Source of the DNA: Macrostomum lignano
Taxonomy: Eukaryota
Length of the DNA stretch: 64,000 nucleotides
Direction: 5' to 3'
Assembly: GCA_002269645.1 (NCBI GenBank)
Contig: NIVC01001678.1
Span: 62,001-126,000 of the forward strand
This document shows, piece after piece, positions 1,108 through 56,473 of the stretch. Both the position numbers and the translations under genes were made by a program. Every line of letters begins with the position of its first letter. Positions within the stretch are counted from its first letter, which is position 1. The notes beneath the pieces are model-generated. The model was given only the letters and a program-made list of their open reading frames with translations. It searched no databases and was not told the DNA's origin.

Positions 1108-2012
1108 ACGAGTATAACTTTGGCTGTCAACTTTTCCGTCAACTTTTCCGTTAACTATTCCGTCAACTTTTCATGTTAGTAGGATAAATAACTTTTTCCA
1201 TTAACTATTCCGTCAACTTTTCCGTCAACTTTTCCGTTAACTTTTCCATCAAGTATTCCGATAAATTTTTCCGTTAACTCTTCCGTCAACATTTCGGTTT
1301 ACTATTCCGTTAACTTTTCCGCCAAATATCTCATTACTTTTCCGTTAACTATTTTATCAACATTTATGCAAGTCCGTAAAATATATTCTATCAAATTTTT
1401 TGTGTACTCTGAATGGAAAGTGTTAATTTTTTGCATAAGTGCAGTTTCCTTAGCAATTTTTTATACATGCTTTAATTTTGTTAAGTATATACACAATGTA
1501 CATATATAAATTAGAAATAAAAAATACACGCAAAAATTTCCTGCGCGACATGTTCCAGAATTTAATTGGTATTGCTGCACTACCTGCACTACAACATCTG
1601 CACTTGTTCATCAATTTATCTTTGTGAAATAAAGCGCTGGTACTAGGGAAAATGGAAAAGATGTATGTTGTTACTAACGCAGGCTTGTTTTTTCATTGAT
1701 ATATATAAGCATGCAAACACAATAAATGATCAAAGAGCTACTTGCATGATGATCCTATTTGAGAAAGTCACATATGTTTTTTCAGAACAATAAATTGTTG
1801 ACGGAAAATTTTATGGAATACTTTACGGAAAAGTTGACGGAATACTTGACGGAAAAGTTAACGGAAAACTTGACGGAAAAGTTGATGGAATACTTGACAG
1901 AAAAGTTAACAGAAAACTTGACGGAAAAGTTGACAGAAAACTTGACAGAAAAGTTGACGGAAAAGTTAATGGAAAAGTTGACGGAAAAGTTGATGGCCAA
2001 AGTTATACTCGT
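1108..2012. mobile_element. Foldback-like non-autonomous DNA transposon (905 bp)
   Basis: Perfect 17-bp terminal inverted repeat ACGAGTATAACTTTGGC. Arms are made of 12-bp units ttttccgtcaac / gttgacggaaaa. Flanks match as an 8-bp direct repeat tttctttt (1100-1107, 2013-2020), though this is low complexity. Confidence 0.8.
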
Positions 2013-2145
2013 TTTCTTTTTTATTTTCTTTTTTTCTCTCATATTTTATTTTTTTGATTTTCTATTTTTTTCCTTTTAGTTTTTTGCTTTTATTCTCTCT
2101 CACATATTATATTTCTCTTTTCTTTTCCCTTTATTCTCTTTCCTC

Positions 2146-2505
2146 TGCTCTAGGTTCTCTAACTGGTCCTTCAGGTAAAAAAAGTTTGCAGACCCTATGC
2201 TCTAGGTTTTCTATCTGGTCCTTGAGGTAAAAAAAGTTTGCCAACCCCATGCTCTAGGTTCTCTATCTGGTCCTTGAGGTAAAAAAGTTTGCCAACCCTA
2301 TGCTCTAGGTTCTCTATCTGGTCCTTGAGGTAAAAAAGTTTGCCAACCCTATGCTCTAGGTTCTCTATCTGGTCCTTGAGGTAAAAAAGTTTGCTGACCC
2401 CATGCTGTAGGTCCTCTATCTGGTCCTTGAGGTAAAAAGGTTTGCTGACCCCATGCTCTAGGTTCTCTATCTGGACCTTGAGGTAAAAAAGTTTGCTGAC
2501 CCCTG
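2146..2505 (+). repeat. Seven tandem ~51-bp units resembling a hAT-type MITE right end
   Basis: Unit tgctctaggttctctatctggtccttgaggtaaaaaagtttgccaacccca. The last unit ends gtttgctgacccctg. Confidence 0.85.
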
Positions 2506-2688
2506 TTATAAACTCTTAAGATTTAATAACGAGTCCAACAGACATTATGGTATAGTAAAATAAAATCCAATCAAAAATACCTTATTTAAATTATTATTAA
2601 ATTATTTAATATGAAAGAAATGTATTTTTAACACCTGGCATAATTTATCATTTTCAGACTCTGGTTTCTTGTAAAAAACATCATAAAA

Positions 2689-4284
2689 ATGAAGCCAAGA
2701 AATTCATCAGTGCAGCAGCAAGAAGCGCTGCGCCTGATTAACAACCACAAGCAGACTGCGCGGCCAATGCAGCCATATACTGAATCTCCCCAGAAGCAGC
2801 AGCAACAGAAACAGACAGTTGCGCCAATGTCACCTCTGCCTTTGCCCAGAGAAGTAAAAGAAGAGTGCGAACAGATTATGCTGCTTCAGAAGCAGAAACA
2901 GCTACATGCTATCCCAGATATTTATCCTTGCGGTTTGTGCGCAGAAAATTTTCTGAGCAAACAGGAGCTTGTGCAGCATTTTCTTGTTTGCTGCCGCAGC
3001 GTCTGTTCTCCACCAAGGCCTTTGTTGCCGCCGATCAGTCAGGAGCGCAGTCTATTTAATGCCGGATTAAACCTTCGCAGCGTGCAGCAGCCTGACAGGC
3101 TTAGCACAGTAGACATTGACAGTGGGGATCTGTTGAACAGGCGGTGTGGCGACCGGGACAGTATCGAATCGGCTTGCATTAGTCCGGACAGCGAGCTGTT
3201 CTGGCAGCCAATGCTGGCCGTTAGTCGGGTTGGCGTCACCAGCGAATTTGGCTGCCGTGTGCCCGGCCTGTTCCCCAGGCAGATTGTCGATCCGCACGGC
3301 TATGAAAAGTTCTGCGCCGCCGCTCCTGGCAGTCGATTTCCTACTGGTCGAATTCCGGCCACTGGGTATAGCGGATCAAGCCGAATAGACCGGCTGCGGC
3401 TGAGCAGTCGCTATTGTCATTTCTGGTCCTATCAGGGCTGCAAGTCGCGAGTGCTTCGAGCTAGGCGTGAAAAGAAACTCACCAAAATTATTAAAGATTG
3501 TCAAGCTTTGAAACGGCGACAGCTTCTTAAACAATCCAAGCAGCCGATTAAAGCGGCGCCGCAGATTAAAGATTGCAGCGTTGTGCTGGAACGCCTGCCA
3601 GTTGAAGCGTTCCCGTCGTGTAGCGTTGTTTTGAATCGACTTCAACTACCGAGCTGTAGCGTTGCACTGACTAGGATTGACGAACAACAGCCTAGTGCTC
3701 GCTCGAACAGTAGCAGGGTGATTGAGGCTGAACAGCCGGATCTACAGACTACTAACAGTAGGCGATTGCGTAGCAACAGCAGGAGCAGAACCGACTCCGA
3801 TGTTAGTTTATCGAGAGACCGGTTGAGTTTGTCTGGTACTGACGTTGGCAACAAGCCAACGTCAATTGACAAACAACAGCCTAGTGCTGGCTCGATCGGT
3901 GGCTTGGCGATTGAAGAAGAGGCGAAGAGTAGGCGATTGCGTAGCAGGAGCAGAACTGACTCGGATGTTAGTTTATCGAGCGACAAACTCGATAAAATGT
4001 CTACTCACGTTGGCAACAAGCGACCGCGTCAAGTTAATAGAAAATGGCGTAACAGACGCCAAAGTCCGTCGGTGCAACAGCTGCAGTTTCCATCACCGCC
4101 AAGTCCAACTCGAGCCGCTTTTAAAGCTCAACGGCTTAGGCTTGAGCAGCTAGCGTCCGCTAGGGGCTGTTGGCGTGTGAACTTGCTGCCTATGAACACC
4201 GATCAGGTGCTCTCTGCCGCTGGCTGGCAACAGGCAAGAGATCAAGAAGATGAATCAGCATTCTTATATAAGTTTTTCAACTGA
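2689..4284 (+). CDS. Intronless 531-aa protein with one C2HC-type zinc finger, Q-rich N-terminus, three CSVxLxR(L/I) motifs and an S/R-rich internal duplication
   Basis: Long non-repetitive ORF. YPCGLCAENFLSKQELVQHFLVCC fits C-x2-C-x12-H-x3-C. An acceptor-like ttttcag (2651-2657) lies 31 nt before the ATG. Family not recognised. Confidence 0.8.
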   Translation: MKPRNSSVQQQEALRLINNHKQTARPMQPYTESPQKQQQQKQTVAPMSPLPLPREVKEECEQIMLLQKQKQLHAIPDIYPCGLCAENFLSKQELVQHFLVCCRSVCSPPRPLLPPISQERSLFNAGLNLRSVQQPDRLSTVDIDSGDLLNRRCGDRDSIESACISPDSELFWQPMLAVSRVGVTSEFGCRVPGLFPRQIVDPHGYEKFCAAAPGSRFPTGRIPATGYSGSSRIDRLRLSSRYCHFWSYQGCKSRVLRARREKKLTKIIKDCQALKRRQLLKQSKQPIKAAPQIKDCSVVLERLPVEAFPSCSVVLNRLQLPSCSVALTRIDEQQPSARSNSSRVIEAEQPDLQTTNSRRLRSNSRSRTDSDVSLSRDRLSLSGTDVGNKPTSIDKQQPSAGSIGGLAIEEEAKSRRLRSRSRTDSDVSLSSDKLDKMSTHVGNKRPRQVNRKWRNRRQSPSVQQLQFPSPPSPTRAAFKAQRLRLEQLASARGCWRVNLLPMNTDQVLSAAGWQQARDQEDESAFLYKFFN

Positions 4285-5879: not shown

Positions 5880-8800
5880 TCAGTCTTGCAGCAGTTTGTC
5901 AATCGTTCTCTGCTTATACGAATCAAAGATAATGCCGCTTTTGCCGCCGCTGGCTGGCGCGGTCGCACTCGCTGAACTGAGCTGGTACTGATGCTGCTGC
6001 TGGTGCTGCATCTCAACGTAGAGCAAAGTGTCGTCCGAGTACACAGAGTCTGTGTCGCCAGGCTGACGTAGCTGGGAAGATTGCCCATCCACATCTGTCG
6101 ATGCTTGAGAGACGAAGCTGAGCTCCGAGGTGAGCAGCGGCGGCTTGTTGGCTGGCGATTTCGGCTCCTCGGCTACAAGCGGTACCGCTGCGGCGTTGGA
6201 CTTTCGCTGCTTCTGTTGCGGTTGCCGCTGGTTGCTATTGGCGCCAGCAGCTTCGGGAGCCGTTGCTGCGGCTTCTGGTGCCAGCTGCGCCAGACGAGCC
6301 TCGCTGTCTCGCAGTTGCGTGCGCAGCCGGCGTATCTCTTCGGCTTGGTCGCTTAGCTGCGTTGATAACTCAACGATTAACGACTTGCTGCCGCTGTTGT
6401 TGTTGTCGTTACCATTGCCGGCATTGTCAGGGTTGGCGGCGGCTCCAGCTGGCGGCCGCGGGCTCGTCACGGACACGAGGGCCGTCTCTGACAGGCCTAG
6501 TCGCTCTGTAGGTTAGATACGAGTTTGTTCAGCCGGATCTACAGGTAGTGGTAAAAGACTAGCAATCTGCGCCCCCCCCCCCCCCTGTTTGCAGACTTCT
6601 GTAAATTCCGTGGGTCAGAGAGGCATAGGAGGGGAAAGGGTAGGGGTAGAGAGAGATGCTGCTATTTTATTTGATTTTGAACTTTTACTTGATGCCAGCT
6701 GGCAGCCTGATGGTTTTTGACTTGGCATCCTGGATTCACTGTGACTTAGATGCTTTAAAACAGGGGTCGGCTATCTGGCCCTCAGGGTCCTTAAAAATTA
6801 ACAATAGCAAACCGGCCTGCTCAGATTTGTCTCTTCTCAGCTCTCTTTTCTTTTTTTCTACTGTCCCCTCCTCTCCTCTCTCTTCTCTTCTCTCCTCTCT
6901 CATCTTCTCTCTCCTCTCTCCCCCCTCTCTCATCTCCTCTCTCCCCTCCTCTCTCCCCTCCTCTCTCATCTCCTCTCTCTTCTCTCTCCCTCGTCTCTCA
7001 ACGCTGCCCTCCTCTCTCTTCTCTCCCCTCTCCTCCTCTCATCTCCACTTTCTCTCCTATCTCCCCTCCTCTCTCCTCTGTCCCCTCCTCTCCCCTCCTC
7101 TCTCATCTCCACCCTCTCTTCTCTCCCCTCCTCTCTTCTACAGTATATCTGCATGGCTCTTAAGTTAAAAAGGTTTTCCGACCCGTGCTTTAAAAAATCC
7201 AACCCCACACCTACTAGCTCGATCGAAGACTTTACAAGTTTACATGCGTTAGCTGCATGATGTCAACGATGCAAAAAGGCGTCACCTTTGAGCTGTCTGT
7301 TCTCCAGGTTAAGCTGGTGCACCTCCTGTCGCAGCTCCATGATGCGGATAGTGGTCGATTGTCGCAGTTCAGCCACTTGGCCAACTAATTCTCGAATTTT
7401 CTTTTTGTGACGAGATTTCTGCGGAATTGCAAAGTGAAATTGCGCCCTTCAGGTGATTCTGAACAGATTAGGACAGGATTATTGTGACCGATTTTGGTGT
7501 CCGAGGAGAGTCAATTGGGATGTCAGAAAGGGATGCGATTTAGGTGTCCGAGGGAAGGAATTCGTGTCTACAAGGGAAGAAACTCGGGTGTCCGAAACGG
7601 AGGAATTTCGGCGTCCGAAGGTGAGGAATTTGGGTGTCCGAAAAGGAGGAATTTGGGTGTCCGAGAGGGAGGAATTTGGGTGTCCGAAGTGGAGGAATTT
7701 GGGTGTCAAAGAGGAGGATTTTGGGTGTCCGAGAGGTAGGAATTTGGGTGTCCGAGGGAAGGAATTCCGGTGTCCGAGGGGGAGAAATTTGGGTGTCCGA
7801 GGAACCCAATGGATTAGGGCCGATTGGAGTGGCCAAAGAGAGCTCACCTGTTTCGCCGCTTCCGCTCGCTCCTTGGCTGCGGCCTCCTCAAGCTGACGGA
7901 TGCGCAGGTCGCGCAGTCGGAGGCTCTCGTCCGGCGTGGCCGGCTCCTCCCGGGTGCGCAAGTCTCGAATCAGTCGGAGCTCTTCATCGCGTCTCCGCAA
8001 CTGGCTGGCCAAGTCTGACAGCTCTTCCTGCTGGCGCTGGATCTGACCGAGATGAATAGGATTAGTGCTGACAAGGGGAATCTTCCCAAAATACCCCCAT
8101 TAGTAGTGGGAGTAGCTATCCTGCATTCCCTGTTCTCTACCACCAGTGAGTAGCTATCCTGCATTCCCTGTTCTCTACCACCAGTGAGTAGCTATCCTGC
8201 ATTCCATGTTCTCTACCACCAGTGAGTAGCTATCCTGCATTTCCTGTTCTCTACCACCAGTGAGTAGCTATCCTGCATTCCCTGTTCTCTACCACCAGTG
8301 AGTAGCTATCCTGCATTCCCTGTTCTCTACCACCAGTGAGTAGCTATCCTACATTCCCTGTTCTCTACCACCAGTGAGTAGCTATCCTGCATTCCATGTT
8401 CTCTACCACCAGTGAGTAGATATCCTGCATTCCCTGTTCTCTACCACCAGTGAGTAGCTATCCTGCATTCCCTGTTCTCTACCACCAATGAGTAGCTATC
8501 CTGCATTCCCTGTTCTCTACCACCAATGAGTAGCTATCCTGCATTCCCGTTCTCTACTGCACTAGTGAGTAGCTATCCTGCATTCCATGTTCTGTACCAC
8601 CAGTGAGTAGCTATCCTGCATTCCCTGTTCTCTTCTAACCAGTGAGTAGCTATCCTGCATTCCCTGTTCTCTTCTAACCAGTGAGTAGCTATCCTGCATT
8701 CCCTGTTCTCTTCTAACCAGTGAGTAGCTATCCTGCATTCCCTGTTCTCTTCTAACCAGTGAGTAGCTATCCTGCATTCCCTGTTCTCTACCACCAGTGA

Positions 8801-10488
8801 GTACTATCCTGCATTCCCTGTTCTCTTCTAACCAGTGAGTAGCTATCCTGCATTCCCTGTTCTCTTCTAACCAGTGAGTAGCTATCCTGCATTCCCTGTT
8901 CTCTACCACCAGTGAGTAGCTATCCTGCATTCCCTGTTCTCTACCACCAGTGAGTAGCTATCCTACATTCCCTGTTCTCTACCACCAGTGAGTAGCTATC
9001 CTGCATTCCATGTTCTCTACCACCAGTGAGTAGATATCCTGCATTCCCTGTTCTCTACCACCAGTGAGTAGCTATCCTGCATTCCCTGTTCTCTACCACC
9101 AATGAGTAGCTATCCTGCATTCCCTGTTCTCTACCACCAATGAGTAGCTATCCTGCATTCCCGGTTCTCTACTGCACTAGTGAGTAGCTATCCTGCATTC
9201 CATGTTCTGTACCACCAGTGAGTAGCTATCCTGCATTCCCTGTTCTCTTCTAACCAGTGAGTAGCTATCCTGCATTCCCTGTTCTCTTTTAACCAGTGAG
9301 TAGCTATCCTGCATTCCCTGTTCTCTTCTAACCAGTGAGTAGCTATCCTGCATTCCCTGTTCTCTTCTAACCAGTGAGTAGCTATCCTGCATTCCCTGTT
9401 CTCTTCTAACCAGTGAGTAGCTATCCTGCATTCCCTGTTCTCTTCTAACCAGTGAGTAGCTATCCTGCATTCCCTGTTCTCTACCACCAGTGAGTACTAT
9501 CCTGCATTCCCTGTTCTCTTCTAACCAGTGAGTAGCTATCCTGCATTCCCTGTTCTCTTCTAACCAGTGAGTAGCTATCCTGCATTCCCTGTTCTCTTCT
9601 AACCAGTGAGTAGCTATCCTGCATTCCCTATTCTCTACCACCAGTGAGTACTATCCTGCATTCCCTGTTCTCTTCTAACCAGTGAGTAGCTATCCTGCAT
9701 TCCCTGTTCTCTTCTAACCAGTGAGTAGCTATCCTGCATTCCCTGTTCTCTACCACCAGTGAGTACTATCCTGCATTCCCTGTTCTCTTCTAACCAGTGA
9801 GTAGCTATCCTGCATTCCCTGTTCTCTACCACCAGTGAGTACTATCCTGCATTCCCTGTTCTCTTCTAACCAGTGAGTAGCTATCCTGCATTCCTTGTTC
9901 TCTACTCAAAAAGTAGCTACCGTTTTGAATGTGTTTTACAGTGGTATTCGCAGTGATTAGGTATGCAATAACGTATAACCGAAGATTTAAACAATATAAT
10001 AAACTGTTATAATCAACCCATACCGTATTCAATGCTCGCAGATGTTCCTGCTGTGGGTCATCTGCTGTCCACGCGCCCGCTGCTGTTGCTGTTGAATAAT
10101 TTCGAGACTCATCCTTAAAAAAGCATCAAATTAATCAACAAGTTTTTTTTCGAAATATGTATTTTCAACGTAACGAATAAATGCTTTTTAATTAAAGGAT
10201 AAGAAAGCTTACAGATTCATTCGTACGACCATCGCTGCTGGTTGTCCTAAGTTTTGAATCATTTCTACAACAAAATAAGTGAAAGCTTAGCAAACTAATT
10301 GCAAATTGGCAAGGCAGGCGGCACAAATTAGTAGCATAAATTTTCGTAAATCGATTTATTTTTTTTACAAACGGAAACCCAATGTATGCAGTACAAATAG
10401 CTATAGAAAAATTAGCCTACCTTATTCTTGATCTATCAACAGACGGCGGCAAAGGTTCGCCTTTTTCAAGGCTTGCAGAAGTTCCCAT
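5880..10488 (-). CDS. CCDC192: Coiled-coil protein with N-myristoylation-type start (MGTSAS), CCDC192-like, 387 aa, 6 exons
   Basis: Exons 10421-10488, 10213-10264, 10024-10113, 7848-8042, 7286-7418, 5880-6505. All introns are GT-AG, phases are consistent and the total is 1164 nt. KQKSRHKKKIRELVGQVAELRQSTTIRIMELRQEV and KSLIVELSTQLSDQAEEIRRLRTQL resemble CCDC192 as I recall it. The gene model is firmer than the symbol. Confidence 0.7.
6761..7187. mobile_element. hAT-type MITE with CT-rich interior, in the last intron of the CCDC192-like gene
   Basis: Ends caggggtcgg ... ccgacccgtg. Exact 8-bp target-site duplication ctttaaaa (6753-6760, 7188-7195). Confidence 0.85.
7490..7805. repeat. ~20-21-bp intronic minisatellite (gaggaatttgggtgtccga)
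   Basis: Tandem units between exons 7286-7418 and 7848-8042. Confidence 0.9.
8110..9905. repeat. 38/39-bp intronic minisatellite (agtgagtagctatcctgcattccctgttctctaccacc)
   Basis: Fills most of intron 8043-10023. The rare variant ctactgcactag recurs at a 615-bp offset, indicating a higher-order block duplication. Confidence 0.95.
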
Positions 10489-10638: not shown

Positions 10639-13306
10639 GTAAGAAGAGAAACGAGTGTGTAGTAATTTTTTTCAGACAATAGGGCATTGCTTTTGCAGGA
10701 CAATCATCCAAATAAAAGCACAAATTCAAAAACATCTTACCCTTTTTTCGCAAAATACCCTGTCCTGTAACTTTAGCCACCAAACTCCTAGGTCCTTACA
10801 GCACTAATCACTAATTGAGCTGAGCATTGATTGATCCTGAATCAGGAATAACGTATGCTGCAGGGAGCAGCAAAGCTCAGTTCTTTGATGTGAAAGCTAC
10901 CCCGATCACCTAGAAAGAGATAAGCAATAATCAGATTTAAAGTATTAAAAAAGAATGCACTCCGGGTTCCTGGCTTAAGGCTTGGCTTAAGGGTTAGAAA
11001 ATTCGAGTATTGTAAAAATTTTAAATAAGCCCTCGAATCTAATAAAGCTAAGTCATTAGCATTTTTATTAAAAATATTTTTGGTAACTGATTTATTATGC
11101 TTTATGTAACTGTTTGCACAACCGTAAAAAAATCCCCCTATTTTTAAAGACTGCATTTGTTAATATCCACTGCACAAAAGTTTTACGTTTTTTAAACTTA
11201 CGAATTAGTGAGCTTTTTTGAAGGAAGTTTGAAGGTCAATATTGTTATTTCCTAATTTAGACAATATAAAGTAGCGAGGTATTTGCAAAACTAAGAATTT
11301 TTAATCGGTCTGTTGTGTTGCAGTTAAAGCGTATCAAATTTTACCTTCGCTTCAACTGTTTCTTGTTTTTTAATTTCTACAATGACACAAATGGTTCATT
11401 CGAAAGCTAAAGCTTTAGAAATATTAAAGCTTGATCCAAGTAAGTTTTCTTAAACCATCCCCTCTTGTGCCGTGGCTAAACTTGCATATGCCATATGAGG
11501 GGGGAGTATTGTAATTTTAATCTTATTTGGGGCTTATTTTTGGCCAGCCTAAAAAGTTGGGCCAATCTGCCCCCCGCCCCAACTTAAAAATCCTGGATCT
11601 GCCACTGCATGGAGTGGTGGCCAGTGGGAAGTGTTGGGCAAAGTTTTAGCACTTCTGGCACTTTCAGTACCAGAAGTTACTATTTCTTTAAGTGGCACTT
11701 TTTGGTTCGTTTTTTAGAATGCCAGACTTAGCATTAGCAGTCACTTAGGTAATGAAAGTTAATTTTTGATAAGTCTAATACACACAGTAGGTCACTGGTC
11801 AGATCGTCATATTCCATTTCGTCATATCAGATGACAAAGTGACCAGAAGCAAAGAAGCTTGAAAAATAATATGACAAAGTGACCAAATATTTTGTTTTAC
11901 TGGATACTTTGTCATCAACCAATCAATCTGTGCATGATTTGAGTTAGTGTAAACTAACACTTTTTTGTTTAATAACTAAAAGCTGCGGCAAGCAGAACCG
12001 ATCTATTGACAGGTTTTATCAATCAAGATGACAAAATGATTGGGATCATTAGGATTCCAAGTAAATATATTTAATTGCCACAATAATTCACTAATATGAT
12101 TGGTGGATAACGAAATGACTTTCTTCAGGTAGTGCATGGTAATTAAGATGACGAAGTGACCATAGTTGAGGTGAGCACCCCAGACACCTAGATGACGAAA
12201 TGGCAGATGACAAAATGACTAGGAACCACACAGTACATCCGGTAATTGAAAAAGAAAACTTAGGTGCTTAACTGCCAATTTAGCACTGAATATAGGCCTA
12301 TCCTTAAAAAACAAAACTTTAAAAAACAATTATTAAAAAATAAATTATAAATTATATGGTTTTTGCTTTTTAAGTTATTTGCATAATTTAAACATTATAA
12401 AATCATGAATAAAAGAATTATTGGTATCTACTTGAATAAGGTTATAGAATGATAGCTCCAGTGAAATAAAAAAAGATTAACTAACTTAGGCTTTGATAAG
12501 CTATGAACTTAACCTTGTGATGCCAAAATTAAGAGTGTGTAATTAAATTTTCTATGAGGAATTACAAAGTATTTTTTATGCATTATTGTTTCTTTTGCTT
12601 ATAAATTATTTTGCATAACCCAACTAATGCAAAAAGACATTCAGACAAATATATCCTGGCTTAACAACAAGCTTAAACAATGAAATATTTATTTAAATAC
12701 TTTTAACTGGCAGTTCTTTAAAACTAGAAAGGATTAGTAATACTAATAGAAGTACCGAAGTACCAATAGTTACTTTTAAAACAGATGCCAGAAGTTATTT
12801 TTCTTGGAATCAAAATTGTTTTTTAATTTCTACAATGACACATTGATAACTAAGAACAAACCTGCCCAATACTATTAGTAAGTGTTAGAGGTAGATAAGA
12901 TTAAAGTGATTGGGCAAGTTTGGGAATACTTTTTTTGTAGGTTTAAAATTGGGATCAGATCTTTCAATGTGCTACAGTTTGTAGGTCTATATAGAGTTGT
13001 AGAAAAGAGATATACAATGATATAGACAAAAATATCAGCTATTAAAATTGAAATATAGAAATATTGATTGATTGTGATAAGCTAGTAATAAATAGGGTAA
13101 TTATGTAATAAATATAAGTTAAAACAAAATATAGTCAAGTAATGATTCATTCTACAAATTTTGAATCAAACAACCTATTCTCTACTCCTATTTTAAAGGT
13201 TGGGAATTTTGGGATCTTAAAATTTTTAAGAATATGATCAGCTAAAATTCAACTCAAATTTTGTTTAAGTCTTATGTCAATTTATTGATATGATAAAATA
13301 GTCCTA

Positions 13307-14837
13307 TCCTATATACTAAGAATGAGTTGTCTGTGGGTATGCGATAGATTTAAGAAAAATTAGCTCAACCAATTTTCTTCAAACTTGCACCATTCGATCA
13401 GAAATTTTCCTGGGATGGTACATGCATCCTGGCTAAGAAATTGCTCAATGTTAAAGGGATTAAATATAAAAAAACATGCTTTTTTTGCAAAGGTCAAGCA
13501 ATTTTTTTGGCAAAAGCCAAAGCCAAACTCTTATTGAAATGAGATAGCCTAGATGTGAATAGACTAGGCTACTAATGTAGTGACCTGGGTTCAAATCTTA
13601 GTAGTGCAAAATCATTTTTTTAAAAACACCTTAAAACACAAAATGCTAAACATAAAACAAGCAAAATGTCAAACATCAAAAATGGCACCATGTCAAACAT
13701 AAAAGTGGCACCATGTCAGACATAGAGCCACCATGTCAAATATAAAAGAGCCATCATGTCAAAAATAAAAGAGCCACCATATCAAACATAAAAGAGCCAC
13801 CATGTCAGACATAAAAGAGCCACCATGTCAAACAAAAGAGCCACCATGTCAAACATTAAAGAGCCACCATGCTAAACATAAAAGAGCCACCATGCCAAAG
13901 TGCCAAACATTAAAGAGCCACCATGTCAAACGTTAAAGAGCCACCATGTCAAACATAAAAGAGCCACTATGCAAAATATAAAAGAGCCACCATGTCAAAC
14001 ATAAAAGAGCTACCATGTCAAACATAAAAGAGCCACCATGTCAAACATAAAAGAGCCACCATGTCAAACTTAAAAGAGCCACCATGTCAAACAAAAAAGC
14101 CACCATGTCAAACATTAAAGAGCCACCATGCCAAACATAAAAGAGCCACCATGCAAAACATAAAAGAGCCATAATGTTGAACATTATAGAGCCACCATGC
14201 CAAACATCAAAGGGCCACCATGTCAAACATTAAAAAGCCACCATGTCAAACAATAAAGGCCACCATGCAAAACATGAAAGAGCCACCATGTCGAACATAA
14301 AAGAGCCACCATGTCAAACATAAAAGAGCCACCATGCCAAACATTAAAAAGCCACCATGCCAAACATAAAAGAGCCACCATGTCAAACATAAAAAAGCCA
14401 CCATGACAAACATATGTGCCTCCATGTCAAATGTTAAAGAGCCACGTTGTCAAACAGTAAAGGGCCACCATGTAAAACATATAAGAGCCACCAAGTCAAA
14501 CATATACGTGACTCCATGTCAAACATTAAAGAGCCACCATGTCAGACAACTGAGCCACCAGGTCAAAAATAACAGAGACACCATTTTAAATGTAAAAGGG
14601 CCGCCATGGCAAACATAGAAGAGCCACCATGTCAATATTAAAGAACCCATGTCAAACATAGAAGAGCCACCATGTCAAACATTAAAGAGCTATCATGTCA
14701 AACACAAAAGAGCCACCATGTCAAACATAGAAGAGACGCCATTTCAAACATAGAAGAACAACCGTTTAAAACATAAAAGGAAGTGTCATGCCATACAAAA
14801 TGGAGCCACTATTAAGCTAAGGAACTTATTGCACTAG
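13307..14837 (+). mobile_element. Helitron-like non-autonomous repeat containing a tRNA-like segment and a ~23-bp minisatellite
   Basis: Begins a|TCctatatactaagaatgagttgtctgtgggtatg and ends near CTAG at 14834-14837. Homologous, in inverted orientation, to 46516-47267 (shared gctaagaaattgctcaatg...catgctttttttgcaaaggtcaagc). Minisatellite aaacataaaagagccaccatgtc at ~13660-14810. Confidence 0.55.
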
Positions 14838-14849
14838 CTACTTGTTCTC

Positions 14850-15350
14850 TGGTGGATGTTTGCTATTTAAGGATGGATACTTGCTATCAGGGGGATGCTT
14901 GCTATCTGAGAGATGCTTGCTATCTGAGGGATGCTTGCTATTGGGGGGATGCTTGCTATTGGAAAAATGCTTGCTACTGGGGTAACTTGCTATTGAGAGA
15001 TGCTTGCTCTTGGGGGGTGGAGGGTACTTGCTATCTGAGAGTGGGTTGCTAGATATCTATAAGGTCTCTTTGTGTCCAGGTTATGCTTGCTATCTGGGGT
15101 TGCTTGCGGTCTGGGGAATGCTTGCTATTTGGGGGATGCTTGCTATCTGAGGATGCTTGCTATCTGGGGTCTGGGGAATGCTTGCTATCGGGGGTCTGGG
15201 GAATGCTTGCTATTGGGGGTATGCTTGCTATCTGGGGGATGCTTGCTATCTGGGGGATGCTTGCTATCTGGGGGATGCTTGCTATCTGGGGGATGCTTGC
15301 TATTTGGGGATCGATGCTTGAATGCTGTCTAGGGATGCTTGCTATCTTGG
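14850..15350. repeat. ~18-bp minisatellite (ggggatgcttgctatctg)
   Basis: Degenerate tandem units directly after the Helitron-like repeat. Confidence 0.85.
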
Positions 15351-16210
15351 GATGTTTTGTTTTTAGAGGGAATGTCTGTTGCTTTTTTATAAAAGCTTTA
15401 TTTTGCTGTCTATTTGTTATTTGTCTTGGAGTCTTTATTTGTAAAGAACAAGGATTCTATCCAGATGTCCCCCATCGGCAAAGATTGCTAGTAGATAACC
15501 TAAAAACTTATCAATGACAATTAGCTGTCTCTGGCTTTAATAGTTATCCAATCATTAGTGCCAACAAAATAGAATATTAGTTTCAATAAAATGAATTTGT
15601 CTAATATAGTATTTTGTGTCAACTAGATAAAAAAGAATTTATTACCATTGCACCCACTATCCTACCCTCTCCCATGACAATAATAAAATTGAATGCACTA
15701 GTTGTATACATACAAAAATTTTTATCCCATTGAAAAAAATGTACCATTGTTAAAATAGAACCAGAATTCACTTTTGTTAAAATAGAACTAGAATTCAATT
15801 TTGTTAAAATAAAACTAGAAAACCATGCAATATGGCAATGGGCCTAGATAAATCATTTAAGTTTGTCATTTATCTATGGTAGCATTTACTTTGCCACTCC
15901 AAGGTTCATTTAAATTGTTGCAAAATTGTCCTATTGGGTCCAATTGTATTTAAATTTCTTTAAATATATTTAAATATTAAATATATTTAGCTTGGCTTAT
16001 CTGAAATAACAAGGTAAAAAGTCAATGGCCTAAGACCTAAAATTGGCCATTTTTGCCATTATTCTTGTGTATTGAACATATAAATTTTGTTGTTTAATAC
16101 AATAACAAATTCTGGAGTCTTAATCAGTTGGTATTTGTGGCAAACTTTGTAGGCTTATTTGTATGTTTGGCTTGGTAATGTTAATAATAATATCTCTAAA
16201 CAACTTTTAG

Positions 16211-18351
16211 ATGCATTGCTCACTCCAGCAGATATTAAGGCTGCTTATAAAAACCAGGCTATCCAGTTGCATCCTGAAAGACTCAATCAGTCTGAATTGG
16301 AGATTGTTGCCTCTGTAAGTTGAAATTCAGAGACTTGTATAATTGTATTGATAATGTAAACATTAACTTTTCAGTATTTTTTGCTATTTTTTCTCTTATT
16401 TCTTTGTAGAAATTTCGGCTACTGACATTGGCTTTCAAAAAGCTAACAGGTACAGAACAGGAGGTGAAAGATTTGGATGAAAAGTTTAAGGATCCAATGT
16501 TTATGTGGTACCTGTTCAGTGCTCTATTTGATGAAGATGGTAAGTTTACGAGCGTATGCTTGTTAAAATTTAATGCATTAGTATTGAATTAAATACATAC
16601 TTGTTGACATTTATCTAACTGGCATTGTTGCAGTTCCATCTGACTCCGATACAAGTGACGATGATGATTATGGTAAGTGATTGAAAAGAAGTTTTTAATT
16701 AATATATGATTTCCTTTATTTCATGTTAGAAATTGGGCTTTCTACAAACTATTTGCTCAACTTTCTCATTCCCCATCAGACTACCATCGTCCATGGCAGC
16801 TAAATGGTCATGGCGCTGCGTCCCAGTCATCGGAGTCCAATGACCATCGCAGTCCGACATATCATAATAGAGAAAAAGTGATAAGAACTGCTGAGGTAAA
16901 CTGGTTTTACCACCTTTGCCCTTGATTTGGCTGAGTTTCTGCTTTAGAATGCGTTCCTACACCCTCAGTGCTTGAGAATCTGCCTCTCCCATTCCCTCAG
17001 TGCTTGAGAATCTGCCTTTCCGCTCTCACTCAGTGCTTGAGAATCTGCCTCTCCGCTCTCCCTCAGTGCTTGAGAATCTGCCTCTCCGCTCTCAATCAGT
17101 GCTTGAGAATCTGCCTCTCCGCTCTCCCTCAGTGCTTGAGAATCTGCCTCTCCGCTCACTCAGTGCTTGAGAATCTGCCGCTCCCATTCCCTCAGTGCTT
17201 GAGAATCTGCCTCTCCCATTCCCTCAGTGCTTGAGAATCTGCCTCTCCATTCCCTCAGTGCTTGAGAATCTGCCTCTCCATTCCCTCAGTGCTTGAGAAT
17301 CTGCCTCCCCATTCCCTCAGTGCTTGAGAATCTGCCTCTCCGCTCTCCCTCAGTGCTTGAGAATCTGCCTCTCCATTCCCTCAGTGCTTGAGAATCTGCC
17401 TCCCCATTCCCTCAGTGCTTGAGAATCTGCCTCTCCGCTCTCCCTCAGTGCTTGAGAATCTGCCTCTCCATTCCCTCAGTGCTTGAGAATCTGCCTCCCC
17501 ATTCCCTCAGTGCTTGAGAATCTGCCTCTCCGCTCACTCTCGCACCCCAATGCGCCGGTCCGCAGGAAGCAGAAAAGAATGCCAACGAGCTGATTGAGGC
17601 CGAGGAGCAGAGAAAGGAGCAGCTGCTTAAACGAGATGAAAAAAAGCGAAAAAAGAGAGAAAAAAAGCTGCGCAAAAAGCAAAATCTTGAGCTGCAATCG
17701 TCTTTTGCTAATGCGAATGGCAGCGGTGGTCACCATGGAAAAGGTGGCTTATCTCACGAAGCTGGCAGTTCAAACGGATCTGCAGACCACGGTGAAAACA
17801 ATACAGATGGAAATATAGAAGAGGTTAGTGCGCATTTGTTCAAATTTACTTGGAACTTTATTCAACCTATTTACACATGCTACTTTCTCTACTCTAAGTA
17901 GCTATATAAGAGACGAGCTTTTTGTCGTCTATTGATGAAAATAATAAATTTTGAACTTTTGTAATACCCTACTAATAGTAGTCGAAAAAAGGGTTGAATA
18001 ACAAATCAATTTCTTTCTCGATCTACTTTTTAAATTCTTTAGGAAAATTTCGACTCAAACAGCGCATTTGTCGTGTCTGGTATAAAATCCGGTGGGTCGC
18101 TATCCACTAATTATGACAAGCAGCCGCTACAGCAGCAGCAACAGCCAATATATCCTGTTGATAGTGTACAAGCTGTCAATCAATTGTCTACCCAGCTTCA
18201 TCGTCAGCATCTTCATCAACATTATCATCAGCAGCAGCAGCAGTTGCAGCCGATTGTTCCCCAGTCGTTAGCTTTCGTATCTGAGTCGTCTGAGCCGCCG
18301 AAACCGAAGCCCCGACCGCGGCAAATTCATCTGCTTCAGCAGCAGCAGCAG

Positions 18352-18383
<32 letters not shown>

Positions 18384-21297
18384 GCAACAGCAACAGCAGC
18401 CAATAGCTAACCCTACAGTAGAGCCCATAGCCACATCCCGTGAACTGGCTAAAGCTGCTAATGCGTGCATGGCTGCTGGCGAGCTAAACAGGGCCCTGCA
18501 ATTATATTGCAATGCTATTAGTTTGAATCCCACCGACTGTCGCTACTATGGCAGCAGGGCCGCTTGTTTGTATCAGTTGGACAGATTTCAGGTTAGTTGG
18601 TACACTGCTAATCAACAATACAGTGGCATTTCTTAGAACTGGATTGAATTCAATATCTGAAAAATTGGAATTGTAAGCCACTGAAGCACCTGAGGGTTAA
18701 AAGCAATTCACTCAAGTACCTGTGAGTTAGAGGCAACCTATTGAAGGCCCTGAAGGTTAGAGGCAACCCACTGAAGCACCTGAGGGTTAGAGGCAACCCA
18801 CTGAAGCACCTGAGGGTTAGAGGCAGACAACCCACCGAAGCACCTGAGGGTTAGAGGCAACCCACTGAAGCACCTGAGGGTTAGAGGCAACCCACTGAAG
18901 CACCTGAGGGTTAGAGGCAACCCACTGAAGCCCCTGAAGGTTAGAGGCAACCCACTGAAGCACCTGAGGGTTAGAGGCAACCCACTGAAGCACCTGAGGG
19001 TTAGAGGCAACCCACTGAAGCACCTGAGGGTTAGAGGCAGACAACCCACCGAAGCACCTGAGGGTTAGAGGCAGACAACCCACCGAAGCACCTGAGGGTT
19101 AGAGGCAGACAACCCACCGAAGCACCTGAGGGTTAGAGGCAACCCACTAAAGCACCTGAGGGTTAGAGGCAACCCGCTGAAGCACCTGAAGGTTAGAGGC
19201 AACCCACCGAAGCACTTAAGGGTTAGAGACAACCCACTGAAGCACCTGAAGGTTAGAGGCAATCCGCTAAACTGACAAATTCCAGGAATGCCTAACAGAC
19301 GCCAACGAGGCCGTCCGCCTCAGCCCTGTCTACGCCCGCGGATTCTACATGCGCGGCCTGGCCCAGCTGCGCCTGGAGCAGCCGGCCGAGGCCTGCGCCA
19401 GCTTTGCCCACGTGCTGGCGATCGACCCGAACAGTTCAGACGCGGCCGCTAGGCTGAACGAAGCCAAAAAACTTCAGTTAGAGTCCATGGGTTTTACAGC
19501 CGCTCGGTGCGAGGAAGCTTTGAATAGAAATAATGGCAACATGCAGCTGGCCGCTGACTGGCTGATGACGGTGGCCACCGCCGCCTCGCCTCACGGGAAT
19601 GTACAGCCTCGGACCGCCGTGCCAGCTGTTTCCCAGCAGGTGAGGCTTCTAAAGTTGCTGGAGCTTGTATCGTCTGTGAAAATTGTATAGTTTGTGAAGA
19701 TCCTATAGTTTGTGAAGATTCTATAGTTTGTGAAGATTCTATAGTTTGTGAAGATTCTATAGTTTGTGAAGATTCTATATAGTTTGTGAAGATTCTATAT
19801 AGTTTGTGAAGATTCTATAGTTTGTGAAGATTGTATAGTTTGTGAAGATTCTATAGTTTGTGAAGATTGTACAGTTTGTGAAGATTGTATAGTTTGTGAA
19901 GATTGTATAGTTTGTGAAGATTGTACAGTTTGTGAAGATTGTATAGTTTGTGAAGATTGTATAGTTTGTGAAGATTCTATAGCTTGTGAAGATTCTATAG
20001 TTTGTGAAGATTGTACAGTTTTTGAAGATTCAATAGTTTGTGAAGATTCGATAGTTTGTGAAGATTCAATAGTTTGTGAAGATTCTATACTTTGTGAAGA
20101 TTCTATAGTTTGTGAAGATTCTATAGTTTGTGAAGATTGTACAGTTTGTGAAGATTGTATAGTTTGTGAAGATTCAATAGCTTGTGAAGATTCTATAGTT
20201 TGTGAAGATTGTACAGTTTTTGAAGATTCAATAGTTTGTGAAGATTCGATAGTTTGTGAAGATTCTATAGTTTGTGAAGATTCGATAGTTTGTGAAGATT
20301 CAATAGTTTGTGAAGATTCTATAGCTTGTGAAAATTGTATAGTTTGTGACGATTGTATAGTTTGTGAATATTCTATAGTTTGTGAAGATTGTATAGTTTG
20401 TGAAGATTGTATAGTTTGTGAAGATTGTATAGTTTGTGAAGATTCTATAGTTTGTGAAGTTTGTATAGTTTGTGAAGATTGTATAGTTTGTGAAGATTCT
20501 ATAGTTTGTGAAGATTCTATATAGTTTGTGAAGATTGTATAGTTTGTGAAGATTGTATAGTTTGTGAAGATTGTATAGTTTGTGAAGATTGTATAGTTTG
20601 TGAAGATTCTATAGTTTGTGAAGTTTGTATAGTTTGTGAAGATTGTATATTTTGTGAAGATTCTATAGTTTGTGAAGATTCTATATAGTTTGTGAAGATC
20701 CTATAGTTTGTGAAGATTCTATAGTTTGTGAAGATTGTATAGTTTGTGAAGATTCTATAGTTTGTGAAGATTCTATAGTTTGTGAAGATCACTTTCACTT
20801 GCGATCACTCAATATGTCGGATTGGTTCAAAATGCTCCATTCTTTCATCGCCTCGCCCTCTGCAGGCCCGTCCATCATCAGCGGCTCAATCGTACACAGC
20901 TGCAGCCAAATCTTCCTATGCTCAAGCCATCGGGCAGAGCAAGCCGCAGCTGCAGCATCATCAGCAGCCGCTATCTCAGCAGAAAAATAACTATAACTCT
21001 CATTCTCCGACCGAGCAGCAACCGCAGCAGGAGCAGCAACAAACAGAAATGAAAATCACCGCTCTGTGGGTTGGCAACGTCATGCCTGACGTCAGTGAAG
21101 AGCAGCTGTGCGCCGCTTTCGCCCGTCACGGCAGCGTCGTATCGGCCAGGCTGCTCAGGCAGTCCTGCTGCGCTTTTGTCAACATGCGCAGCCAGGAGGA
21201 CGCCAGGCGGGCCATGATGGCGCTGAACGGCCAGGCGGTTGGCTCCCGACGGCTGCTGGTTAAGTTCAGTGCTAGTGGGCCGAAGAAGGGGCCGTGA
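16211..21297 (+). CDS. TTC31: TTC31-like protein: J-domain-like (HPE) / coiled coil / polyQ / TPR / UBA / RRM (exons 2-9; first exon uncertain)
   Basis: Exons 16211-16314, 16410-16539, 16634-16672, 16780-16895, 17566-17823, 18043-18591, 19286-19639, 20866-21297, all GT-AG with consistent phases. Motifs: TAEEAEKNANELIEAEEQRK and ENFDSNSAFV (TTC31-type); TPRs (ALQLYCNAISLNPTDCRYYGSRAACL, GFYMRGLAQLRL); UBA (LESMGFTAARCEEALNRNNGNMQLAADWL); RRM (ALWVGNV, CAFVNM); J-like DIKAAYKNQAIQLHPER...KFRLLTLAFKKL. Confidence 0.85.
16965..17540. repeat. 31-33-bp intronic minisatellite (ctcagtgcttgagaatctgcctctccattcc)
   Basis: Within TTC31-like intron 16896-17565. Confidence 0.95.
18670..19270. repeat. 30/34-bp intronic minisatellite (cccactgaagcacctgagggttagaggcaa)
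   Basis: Within TTC31-like intron 18592-19285. Confidence 0.95.
19680..20790. repeat. 18-bp intronic minisatellite (tatagtttgtgaagattc)
   Basis: Within TTC31-like intron 19640-20865. Confidence 0.95.
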
Positions 21298-21429: not shown

Positions 21430-21840
21430 ACTGGGCCACTGCCGCCCTTCCCAGATCCTTAGGTGCTGGGCCAGCCTCCCAGATCCCCAGTTGCTGGGCC
21501 AGCCTCCCAGATCCTCAGTTGCTGGGCCAGCCTCCCAGATCCTCAGTTGCTGCTGGGCCAGCCTCCCAGATCCCCAGTTGCTGGGCCAGCCTCCCAGATC
21601 CCCAGTTGCTGGGCCAGCCTCCCAGATCCCCAGTTGCTGGGCCAGCCTCCCAGATCCTCAGTTGCTGGGCCAGCCTCCCAGATCCCCAGTTGCTGGGCCA
21701 GCCTCCCAGATCCCCAGTTGCTGGGCCAGCCTCCCAGATCCTCAGTTGCTGGGCCAGCCTCCCAGATCCCCAGTTGCTGGACCAGCCTCCCAGATCCCAG
21801 TTGCTGGGCCAGCCTCCCAGATCCTCAGTTGCTGGGCCCC
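21430..21840. repeat. 28-bp minisatellite array 1 (cccagatcctcagttgctgggccagcct)
   Basis: Tandem units downstream of the TTC31-like stop codon. Confidence 0.95.
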
Positions 21841-38329: not shown

Positions 38330-39310
38330 CCAATCTCTACTCTCCCCTACCCTACTCTACCTGGTCTCTACTCTCTCCTGCCCCACTCTAACGGGTCTCT
38401 ACTCTCCCCTACCCTACTCTACCTGGTCTCTACTCTCTCCTGCCCCACTCTAACGGGTCTCTACTCTCCCCTACCCTACTCTACCTGGTCTCTACTCTCC
38501 CCTACCCTACTCTACCTGGTCTCTACTCTCCCCTACCCTACTCTACCTGGTCTCTACTTTCCCCTACCCTACTCTACCTGGTCTCTACTCTCCCCTACCC
38601 TACTCTACCTGGTCTCTACTCTCCCCTACCCTACTCTACCTGGTCTCTACTTTCCCCTACCCTACTCTACCTGGTCTCTACTCTCCCCTACCCTACTCTA
38701 CCTGGTCTCTACTCTCCCCTACCCCACTCTAACGGGTCTCTACTCTCTCCTACCCTACTCTACCGGGTCTCTAGTCTCTCCTACCCTACTCTACCTGGTC
38801 TCTACTCTCTCCTGCCCCACTCTAACGGGTCTCTACTCTCCCCTACCCTACTCTACCTGGTCTCTACTCTCCCCTACCCTACTCTACCTGGTCTCTACTC
38901 TCCCCTACCCTACTCTACCTGGTCTCTACTCTCCCCTACCCTACTCTACCTGGTCTCTACTCTCCCCTACCCCACTCTAACGGGTCTCTACTCTCTCCTA
39001 CCCTACTCTACCGGGTCTCTGCTCTCTCCTACCCCACTCTAACGGGTCTCTACTCTCCCCTACCCTACTCTACCTGGTCTCTACTCTCCCCTACCCTACT
39101 CTACCGGGTCTCTACTCTCCCCTACCCTACTCTACCTGGTCTCTACTCTCCCCTACCCTACTCTACCTGGTCTCTACTCTCTCCTGCCCCACTCTAACGG
39201 GTCTCTACTCTTCACTACGCAATCTGTCGGTCTCTACTCTACTCTGCCGGGTCTGTACCCCCCCCAATCCCACTCTGCCGGGTCTCTAACCCTCCATCCC
39301 ACTCTACTCT
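38330..39310. repeat. 31-bp CT-rich minisatellite upstream of ROCK (partial second copy 49481-50140)
   Basis: Unit ctactctcccctaccctactctacctggtct. It contains the left breakpoint of the duplication. Confidence 0.95.
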
Positions 39311-39796
39311 CCTCTTCCGCAGCTTCTTACGTTGACACATTTTTTCTTCAACTTACACTTTTGAACTAATAAAATGTAAATATTAATAAAAAATGACCAA
39401 GTCAGACACTTCCCAGCAAATGCATCCGACACGGGAACGGAAATGCACCATTTTTATTTGAATCATTTTTTTATCTGTTCTTTAAAGCAAATAGCGAAAA
39501 CAGCGAACTGTAAAGCGTATCTGGCATTTATCAACATCGAATGACTGGCTTATTAAGCAAGCGCCAGTGTTTAGGCTCACCATTGAAACAAACAACACAA
39601 AACTGCAGCTGCTGCTGAAATCGAAATTTAACAATATAATTAACCAGGTATGTCTGAAAATAGAATTCACGACGCAGGTAGCTACTTACGTGTTTCTCGA
39701 ATTATAGGATATAAGGAAATCCAGAGGAATAGCTAGAAGATACTTTCTGCCTTTTTGTCAGAAGTAAGTTCAAAAGTTCAATTCAAAGCGGGAGTT

Positions 39797-42555: not shown

Positions 42556-42713
42556 AAATAGAATTCCAATTCGATTTAAGGCGAGAATTGTTTGGGATGC
42601 TATTAAAATTTTGGACAATTTAAATCTCTAGAGACGACGAGATAACTTTGCTGTATTAGGAAGCATTTAAAACAAGATTTTCCTGTCAGATCAAACCGCT
42701 ACCATATTAAATC

Positions 42714-45646
<2,933 letters not shown>

Positions 45647-53542: not shown

Positions 53543-56473
<2,931 letters not shown>

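Follow-up and report, generated by a model that had tools for sequence, protein, structure and literature searches.

A nine-exon gene for a J, TPR, UBA and RRM protein

A 64-kb stretch of Macrostomum lignano DNA, referred to here as the window, carries a gene whose full model has nine GT-AG exons on the + strand (11382-21297) and encodes 679 amino acids. To judge from its sequence, the locus is probably (probability about 0.8) the Macrostomum lignano orthologue within a family of class-C J-domain proteins that is pan-metazoan and experimentally uncharacterised, and whose jawed-vertebrate members are annotated TTC31. The exons are as follows.

11382-11439, + strand: exon 1, MTQMVHSKAKALEILKLDP plus 1 base; start codon and J-domain helix I; ATG, GTAAGT donor and a phase that fits exon 2
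16211-16314, + strand: exon 2, (N)ALLTPADIKAAYKNQAIQLHPERLNQSELEIVAS; J-domain helix II and the HPE loop; helix 25-38 and then a loop in the AF2 model
16410-16539, + strand: exon 3, KFRLLTLAFKKL...; J-domain helices III/IV, then a conserved hydrophobic post-J helix, MFMWYLFSALF
16634-16672, + strand: exon 4, acidic Ser/Asp run VPSDSDTSDDDDY, which aligns with the acidic run of the fish protein P0002
16780-16895, + strand: exon 5, linker, found in the models P0011 and P0001
17566-17823, + strand: exon 6, family motif EAEKNANELIEAEEQRKE, then a Lys/Arg-rich coiled coil (about 17566-17688)
18043-18591, + strand: exon 7, low-complexity/polyglutamine region, then TPR1 and most of TPR2; TPR start at about 18442 (Pfam, family TPR HMM)
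19286-19639, + strand: exon 8, remainder of the TPR module (to about 19432) and UBA domain (about 19475-19570); Pfam TPR_2, UBA_7 and UBA
20866-21297, + strand: exon 9, Gln-rich linker, RRM (about 21064-21255), TGA at 21295-21297

A preliminary description of this DNA had placed the whole gene within 16211-21297. Eight exons do lie there, with AG acceptors and GT donors, and they can be joined in frame as had been proposed, GT-AG signals being present throughout and the frame staying open until the TGA. The J-domain peptide quoted in that description is also present where it was placed, in the exons at 16211-16314 and 16410-16539. What has to be revised is the start of the gene, because the real first exon (11382-11439) lies outside that span. 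An ATG at 16211 was considered as the start codon and rejected; it is out of frame, the exon beginning in codon phase 1.

Two other models overlap the gene. The public model P0011 (BOX15_Mlig018795g4; partial, 176 aa) matches exons 1-6 at 100% identity, exon 1 included. It comes from an independent annotator working on the same assembly as the window, and it joins the J exons to exon 6 with its TTC31-type motif. P0001, a paralogue or allele model, overlaps exons 3-9 and joins exon 3 through exon 9, so the two models overlap each other across exons 3-6. The joins between exons 6, 7, 8 and 9 are predicted ones: the frame is kept, splice signals are present, P0001 predicts them and the orthologues are collinear. 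The public annotation of the contig holds only the 176-aa partial J model and leaves the TPR, UBA and RRM exons without a gene call. The nine-exon, 679-aa model corrects this shortened annotation.

Pfam matches on the spliced protein bear out the domain set and order that had been proposed, J, TPR, UBA and RRM. RRM_1 is matched at 2.2e-12 (47.1 bits) and TPR_2 at 6.7e-12, with UBA_7 at 29.5 bits (cutoff 27) and UBA at 26.1 bits (cutoff 22.4). The expected TPR pair was right as to the kind of repeat but not its number, which is three. The RRM, a predicted RNA-binding domain, has LWVGNV as RNP2 and CCAFVNM as its RNP1 region, with the central Phe retained, and is also matched by a family RRM HMM (75.9 bits) and by PDB RRM structures. 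No CCCH finger was found after it with a regular expression and a family HMM in six frames of the whole 64-kb window. The exon 6 coiled coil scores 32-34 bits with the family coiled-coil HMM and is a long helix (148-175) in the AF2 model. A polyglutamine insertion of about 25 residues is present in the Macrostomum copy.

In the PDB the TPR module is nearest to the TPRs of Hsp70/Hsp90 co-chaperones (SPAG1, HOP, RPAP3, PP5, SGT and CHIP), and binding to Hsp70/Hsp90 tails had been suggested for it. With HOP TPR1 as the reference for the carboxylate clamp (K8, N12, N43, K73, R77), the residues are K, N, N, K, R in HOP, A, N, N, K, R in the family consensus and A, N, S, R, M in Macrostomum. The Macrostomum changes N43S, K73R and R77M leave the five-residue clamp of the EEVD type incomplete, and two of the four family-conserved clamp residues survive. 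The case for tail binding is weaker than in the orthologues, since two of the five positions are altered non-conservatively in Macrostomum only, and this clamp composition argues against EEVD binding.

An ancestral animal architecture

The family was delimited by an exhaustive phmmer search with P0001 as the query, which gave 402 matches at E<=1e-10. About 90 relatives have collinear TPR, UBA and RRM domains, and about 30 of these also have an N-terminal J domain. Pfam DnaJ is found in 26/26 aligned sequences, RRM_1 in 25/25 orthologues and TPR in 24/25, while UBA is conserved family-wide, fish included. Among the representatives, J-CC-TPR-UBA-RRM-CCCH is the most frequent architecture (23 cases). 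The J domain is absent from 119/119 teleost relatives examined. The ancestral layout is an N-terminal J domain, a short hydrophobic helix, an acidic run, a basic coiled coil, three co-chaperone-type TPRs, a UBA domain, an RRM and a CCCH finger.

The affinity to TTC31 suggested in the preliminary description stands, since collinear teleost proteins carry that name in NCBI/UniProt. TTC31-like features are present in the Macrostomum protein: a collinear basic coiled coil followed by the three-TPR module, and UBA and RRM domains after the TPRs as in non-mammalian members. A phmmer alignment with the fish protein P0002 is collinear over residues 94-671 (111 bits). BLASTP with the full model found no match to the same protein, because composition-based adjustment on low-complexity sequence suppressed it. 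When the full protein was used in a word-indexed homologue search, most of the matches were bacterial TPR proteins, probably via low-complexity polyglutamine words.

What if a small J-domain gene and a neighbouring TPR-UBA-RRM gene had simply been fused by reading across repeat-filled introns? The introns are indeed long tandem-repeat arrays, the model was built from genomic sequence, and a contig annotation with a J model but no gene over the downstream exons is what two genes might look like. However, P0011 already links the J exons to the family motif in exon 6, and P0001, overlapping it at exons 3-6, continues to exon 9. In at least 24 orthologues from other phyla a single polypeptide carries these domains, ordered as here. 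Moreover, P0011 stops inside an A-rich stretch of exon 6 (gaaaaaaagcgaaaaaagagagaaaaaaag), which would fit internal oligo-dT priming. An artefact of this kind is very improbable. Less credible still, to the point that it can be practically discounted, is the idea in the preliminary description that the protein is a novel fusion specific to the flatworm lineage. A literature search for J, TPR, UBA and RRM domains combined in one protein found nothing, and human TTC31 is reported to have a coiled coil and three TPRs only (PMC7279152; human TTC31, Q49AM3, is linked to the family via the teleost proteins of that name, and its layout is taken from this source). These points are outweighed by the finding of the same architecture in sponges, coral, echinoderms, hagfish, an ascidian, molluscs, an annelid, a bryozoan and arthropods. 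The claim that a J and a UBA domain together are new to TTC31 fails because the arrangement is already common among orthologues, from sponge to hagfish. J, TPR, UBA and RRM are the ordinary ancestral layout of an animal-wide family, and the Macrostomum copy is a divergent member of it by sequence, having acquired HPE, a degraded clamp and a polyglutamine tract and having lost the CCCH finger.

The J domain and its HPE tripeptide

Recognition of the J domain depends on exon 1. Without it the Pfam DnaJ profile (PF00226) scores 21.5 bits, below the cutoff of 27.8; with it the domain alone (residues 1-73) reaches 31.3 bits and the 176-aa P0011 28.1 bits. Even so, at 28-31 bits, against a best family E-value of 1e-18, this is among the weakest Pfam matches of the family. 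Sequence matches to the region in the PDB are nearly all J proteins. A single-sequence AlphaFold prediction of P0011 was uninformative (pLDDT 50), and an AF2 run with a 26-sequence alignment was used instead. Its model has helices I-IV at residues 8-14, 25-38, 46-67 and 70-79, with block-mean pLDDT of 86-97 over residues 11-90. The best 19 Foldseek matches in the PDB are all J domains (probability 0.51-1.00; >=0.94 in 17/19). The J-like domain proposed for the N-terminus is therefore upheld by the profile match with exon 1 and by the fold, which is, as modelled, a four-helix J fold with the helix II-loop-helix III hairpin.

The replacement of HPD by HPE was also read correctly. The codons CAT CCT GAA stand at 16270-16278, and the invariant HPD tripeptide is absent. 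GAA is one base away from an Asp codon, and the sole second source, P0011, stems from the same assembly. HPD is the majority state among orthologues and, by this sequence comparison, the ancestral one in the TTC31-like family. HPE recurs in Elysia, Candidula and two further transcripts. Elsewhere HPD has decayed to HPT in ticks, YPE in a spider and LPK in an ascidian, and in a lobster there is none. Is this decay coupled to that of the TPR clamp? A comparison across orthologues gave no consistent link: the gastropod HPE members keep the clamp, ticks (HPT) alter N12 only and Macrostomum alters N43, K73 and R77.

HPE had been taken to mark a non-catalytic or inhibitory Hsp70 dock. One version of this is that the Macrostomum domain is a pseudo-J ('type IV') module that keeps the fold without stimulating Hsp70 and has only a structural, docking or inhibitory role. 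Besides HPE itself, the loss of basic residues from helix II (YKNQAIQL vs YKRLALKW in the family consensus), a two-residue insertion ahead of that helix, a Pfam score only just over the cutoff, the decayed clamp in the same protein and the plain HPD decay of other lineages would all fit. However, HPE is reported to be the sole tolerated replacement of HPD, and DjlC, which has HPE, stimulates the ATPase of HscC (PMC13254874, PMC8215388). HPE accounts for about 1% of all J domains (PMC10410713). Gastropod orthologues carry it in a J domain (WHPEKH) and alongside a clamp that are otherwise intact, and in Macrostomum Y32, K33, F56 and the helix III pattern KF...A(F/Y)..L are retained within a confidently modelled fold. 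Recurrence in gastropods and reported tolerance therefore leave the non-catalytic dock unsupported, and loss of Hsp70 stimulation in Macrostomum is on the unlikely side, if far from negligible. The HPE J domain of Macrostomum is probably still competent, and possibly tuned. Part of what the TTC31-like family does evidently needs no Hsp70 stimulation, because several lineages have lost HPD altogether or the whole J domain.

A possible function, and known systems

The analysis shows how the gene is built, which domains it encodes, its J fold, its orthology and its phyletic spread, while each biochemical step of the candidate mechanism that follows is inferred. Through the RRM, with the CCCH finger where present, the protein would be brought to RNA or RNP particles. 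The J domain would recruit Hsp70 there and trigger its ATP hydrolysis, the TPR module might add a second point of contact to a chaperone or other partner, and the UBA domain may bind ubiquitin or a UBL. Perhaps, then, TTC31-like proteins (J, TPR, UBA, RRM and CCCH) are ancient, unrecognised RNA-tethered Hsp70 co-chaperones in RNP or co-translational quality control, whose chaperone-contact sites have repeatedly been weakened or lost: J in jawed vertebrates, HPD in arthropods, and in Macrostomum through HPE and a broken TPR clamp. This proposal is tentative. It nevertheless offers an uncharacterised family a testable hypothesis, that Hsp70 is recruited to RNA or RNPs, and natural HPD, HPE and degenerate variants are at hand for comparison. 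According to the survey, TTC31, an obscure gene of vertebrates, descends from an RNA-binding protein with a J domain, of a type found from sponges through to hagfish. No paper on such a descent was found; in the literature TTC31 is mentioned only in screens or disorder surveys, and nothing was found on si:dkey-33c12.4. The locus itself carries little weight, being an ordinary if divergent orthologue in which the supposed new fusion is the ancestral state of the family.

Among characterised proteins, DNAJC7 (TPR2) and DNAJC3 (p58IPK) likewise combine co-chaperone-type TPRs with a J domain. Their TPRs are N-terminal and their J domain C-terminal, and they have no UBA, RRM or CCCH, whereas the Macrostomum J domain is N-terminal. 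No specific sequence relationship to either protein was seen, the TPR matches being generic (HOP, SPAG1, RPAP3, PP5). Class-C J proteins include a recognised 'DnaJ-TPR' architecture (PMC10410713). HPE within an otherwise J-type helix II, loop and helix III also occurs in natural HPE J domains such as those of E. coli DjlB/DjlC (PMC13254874, PMC10410713). However, DjlB/DjlC are tail-anchored proteins of bacteria whose partner is the divergent Hsp70 HscC, with no homology beyond the J domain.

Closer parallels are found within the family. Teleost TTC31 (zebrafish si:dkey-33c12.4) shares with the Macrostomum protein the acidic run, the EEA..A.ELI.EEE coiled-coil motif, three TPRs, UBA and RRM, but it has no J domain (0/119) and nearly always has a C-terminal CCCH finger. 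The uncharacterised orthologues of Antedon (XP_071947047), Corticium (XP_062512680), Porites (XP_073239504), Eptatretus (A0A8C4N6M9) and Elysia (GFR71074, 'TTC31') represent the invertebrate and hagfish members, in which the domain order is that of Macrostomum: J, hydrophobic helix, acidic run, coiled coil, three TPRs, UBA and RRM. In most orthologues the HPD segment is WHPDKH, the N-N-K-R clamp is intact and a CCCH finger stands at the end, whereas Macrostomum has LHPERL, N-S-R-M, no CCCH finger and the polyglutamine insertion. Its HPE is shared with the gastropod orthologues.

Gene model and genomic surroundings

A single open frame runs through eight exons, from 16211 to a TGA at 21295-21297, in a region of the window that is eukaryotic. 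The preliminary description had placed a TTC31-like gene here, and three-frame translation with splice-site inspection found the peptides it quoted encoded precisely at the positions it gave; the HPE codons (CAT CCT GAA) lie at 16270-16278. Its span and its J-like, TPR, UBA and RRM domains hold, apart from a missing first exon and a TPR pair that is in fact three repeats. The ATG at 16211 is out of frame and was rejected as a start. Because the exon beginning there is in codon phase 1, an upstream exon is required, and it was located at 11382-11439. In full, the model comprises nine exons and encodes 679 residues, and this correction is the first part of the value that remains.

Exons of the gene (forward strand). 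Exons 2-9 come from three-frame translation and splice-site inspection; exons 2-8 each have an AG acceptor and a GT donor.
11382-11439, exon 1: ATG, MTQMVHSKAKALEILKLDP plus one base, GTAAGT donor at its end
16211-16314, exon 2
16410-16539, exon 3
16634-16672, exon 4
16780-16895, exon 5
17566-17823, exon 6
18043-18591, exon 7
19286-19639, exon 8
20866-21297, exon 9: TGA at 21295-21297

The 5' part of the gene is already public. BOX15_Mlig018795g4 (P0011; NCBI, partial, 176 aa; contig NIVC01001678.1, assembly GCA_002269645.1) is 100% identical to model residues 1-176, including exon 1. It ends with KRDEKK, within an A-rich coding stretch of exon 6 (gaaaaaaagcgaaaaaagagagaaaaaaag, 17640-17690). 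To us this looks like internal oligo-dT priming, which would account for the shortened public model and for the unannotated TPR, UBA and RRM exons, over which the public annotation of NIVC01001678.1 calls no gene. P0001, a 504-aa UniProt model of a paralogue or allele (94% identical), starts at exon 3 and reaches the stop codon, although parts of it are spliced wrongly. Exon joins after exon 6 are predicted. Could the whole be an artefact that fuses separate genes? This is very improbable, given that P0011 and P0001 overlap over exons 3-6 and that residues 94-671 are collinear with a fish relative (P0002; 111 bits).

The introns are full of tandem repeats (arrays at 16962-17539, 18678-19262 and 19675-20789), as is the 3' region (21449-21838). 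Each long intron and the 3' flank has its own unrelated minisatellite, with periods of 31, 30, 18, 28, 23 and 18 bp and up to 61 copies. Further arrays lie at 13648-14779 and 14875-15309, and minisatellite arrays open spurious long ORFs in several frames. A 27-nt exact direct repeat (TTGTTTTTTAATTTCTACAATGACACA) occurs at 11363-11389, spanning the exon 1 start codon, and at 12816-12842 in intron 1; the second copy, which reads ATG ACA CAT TGA, is thus non-coding. A 1.45-kb insertion may lie between the two. Just upstream, public annotation has a CCDC192-family gene (387 aa, minus strand, ~5880-10488) with an array of ~38-bp period inside its span (8110-9905), and further upstream a 545-aa gene (plus strand, ~1652-4284) with no Pfam hit. 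Elsewhere, 38654-49480 and 49481-60308 form a 10.83-kb head-to-tail tandem duplication (99.7% identity), each copy opening with a ~31-bp repeat array. Either it arose very recently as a segmental duplication, or the assembly produced it.

Domains and the J fold

Pfam, run on the protein minus exon 1, recovers RRM_1 (2.2e-12), three TPR repeats (TPR_2, TPR_1, TPR_8; 6.7e-12), UBA_7 (29.5 bits; cutoff 27) and UBA (26.1 bits; cutoff 22.4). The UBA (LESMGFTAARCEEALNRNNGNMQLAADWLM) and the RRM (RNP2 LWVGNV, RNP1 region CCAFVNM) are well preserved. A polyglutamine tract lies ahead of the TPRs and the protein ends directly after the RRM; no frame of the 64-kb window encodes a CCCH finger.

DnaJ scores 21.5 bits in the same run, below its cutoff of 27.8, and with exon 1 included it scores 31.3 bits (domain alone) or 28.1 bits (P0011). 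The N-terminus matches nearly exclusively J domains among PDB sequences, including DNAJB8, DNAJB2, DNAJC8 and DnaJ. AlphaFold gave a poor model from the single sequence and, with a 26-sequence orthologue alignment, block-mean pLDDT of 86-97 over residues 11-90. The modelled helices span 8-14, 25-38, 46-67 and 70-79, and a fifth (83-95) is a conserved hydrophobic motif. A Foldseek comparison with the PDB has only J domains as its 19 best hits, at probabilities of 0.51-1.00; 17 of the 19 reach 0.94 or more. Together, the DnaJ score, sequence matches, model and structural matches show that the J fold is real.

Spread of the architecture in animals

P0001, itself without a J domain, served as query for an exhaustive phmmer search over 1.84 billion cluster representatives, and 402 hits reached E<=1e-10. 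Among the matches listed, ~90 representatives have TPR-(UBA)-RRM in the same order, ~30 of these start with a J domain (residues ~5-65), and the complete arrangement met most often, in 23 representatives, runs J, coiled coil, TPR, UBA, RRM, CCCH. Pfam run independently on the alignment found DnaJ in 26/26 sequences (P0011 plus 25 orthologues), and RRM_1 in 25/25 and TPR in 24/25 orthologues. J-bearing members come from sponges (Corticium, Halichondria), a coral (Porites), a crinoid and an urchin (Antedon, Diadema), a hagfish (Eptatretus), an ascidian (Phallusia), gastropods (Elysia, named TTC31, and Candidula), a bivalve (Sinanodonta), an annelid (Dimorphilus), a bryozoan (Watersipora), ticks (Rhipicephalus, Dermacentor), a spider (Oedothorax) and a lobster (Panulirus). 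Nearly all named ones are labelled "uncharacterized protein". This spread refutes a lineage-specific new fusion: the preliminary description had itself named an architecture already common among TTC31 orthologues as grounds for dropping the idea, and that is what the search shows.

Searching with the fish protein P0002 added 119 teleost proteins, of which many carry the name TTC31 or si:dkey-33c12.4. All 119 lack the J domain, whereas the CCCH finger is retained in nearly all. Human TTC31 is described as only a coiled coil plus three TPRs (PMC7279152). The spread from sponges to hagfish, together with the J-less teleosts, shows that the J-TPR-UBA-RRM architecture is ancestral to animals and that jawed vertebrates have since lost its J domain. 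TTC31 derives from a J-domain RNA-binding protein, the second part of the remaining value. The Macrostomum lignano gene is best explained as a divergent orthologue within a class-C J-domain protein family that is ancient and unstudied; its structure, domains and fold, and the family's phyletic range, are shown directly. The earlier proposal that one polypeptide joins chaperone, ubiquitin and RNA recognition is partly supported, and the family's probable role is to connect Hsp70 with RNA or RNPs.

The HPE triad and the TPR clamp

WHPDKH is the majority state in the family alignment. HPE also occurs in both gastropods and two unnamed transcripts, and more degenerate triads occur elsewhere (HPT in ticks, YPE in the spider, LPK in the ascidian; also HPS, FPD, FPN, LPD and HPG). 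The lobster and bryozoan members have no triad at all. HPE had been taken to mark a non-catalytic or inhibitory Hsp70 dock. However, it is apparently the sole tolerated replacement of HPD, as in E. coli DjlB/DjlC with HscC (a 2026 review; PMC13254874), DjlC stimulates the HscC ATPase (PMC8215388), and among ~280,000 J proteins HPE accounts for ~1% of J domains, ~1,200 of them eukaryotic (PMC10410713). The dock is therefore unsupported, though still conceivable. What if the Macrostomum lineage nevertheless carries a pseudo-J domain? Helix II has lost basic residues (YKNQAIQL vs consensus YKRLALKW) and the score of the domain is weak, but the tolerance of HPE and the activity of DjlC count against this, which leaves it possible but rather unlikely.

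The closest TPR modules are of the Hsp70/Hsp90 co-chaperone type (SPAG1, HOP, RPAP3, PP5, SGT, TOM70, CHIP). At the clamp positions of HOP TPR1 (K8, N12, N43, K73, R77) the family consensus reads A, N, N, K, R, whereas Macrostomum has A, N, S, R, M. Among full-length members N43 and R77 are changed only in Macrostomum, and their replacement makes binding of EEVD tails doubtful in this species.
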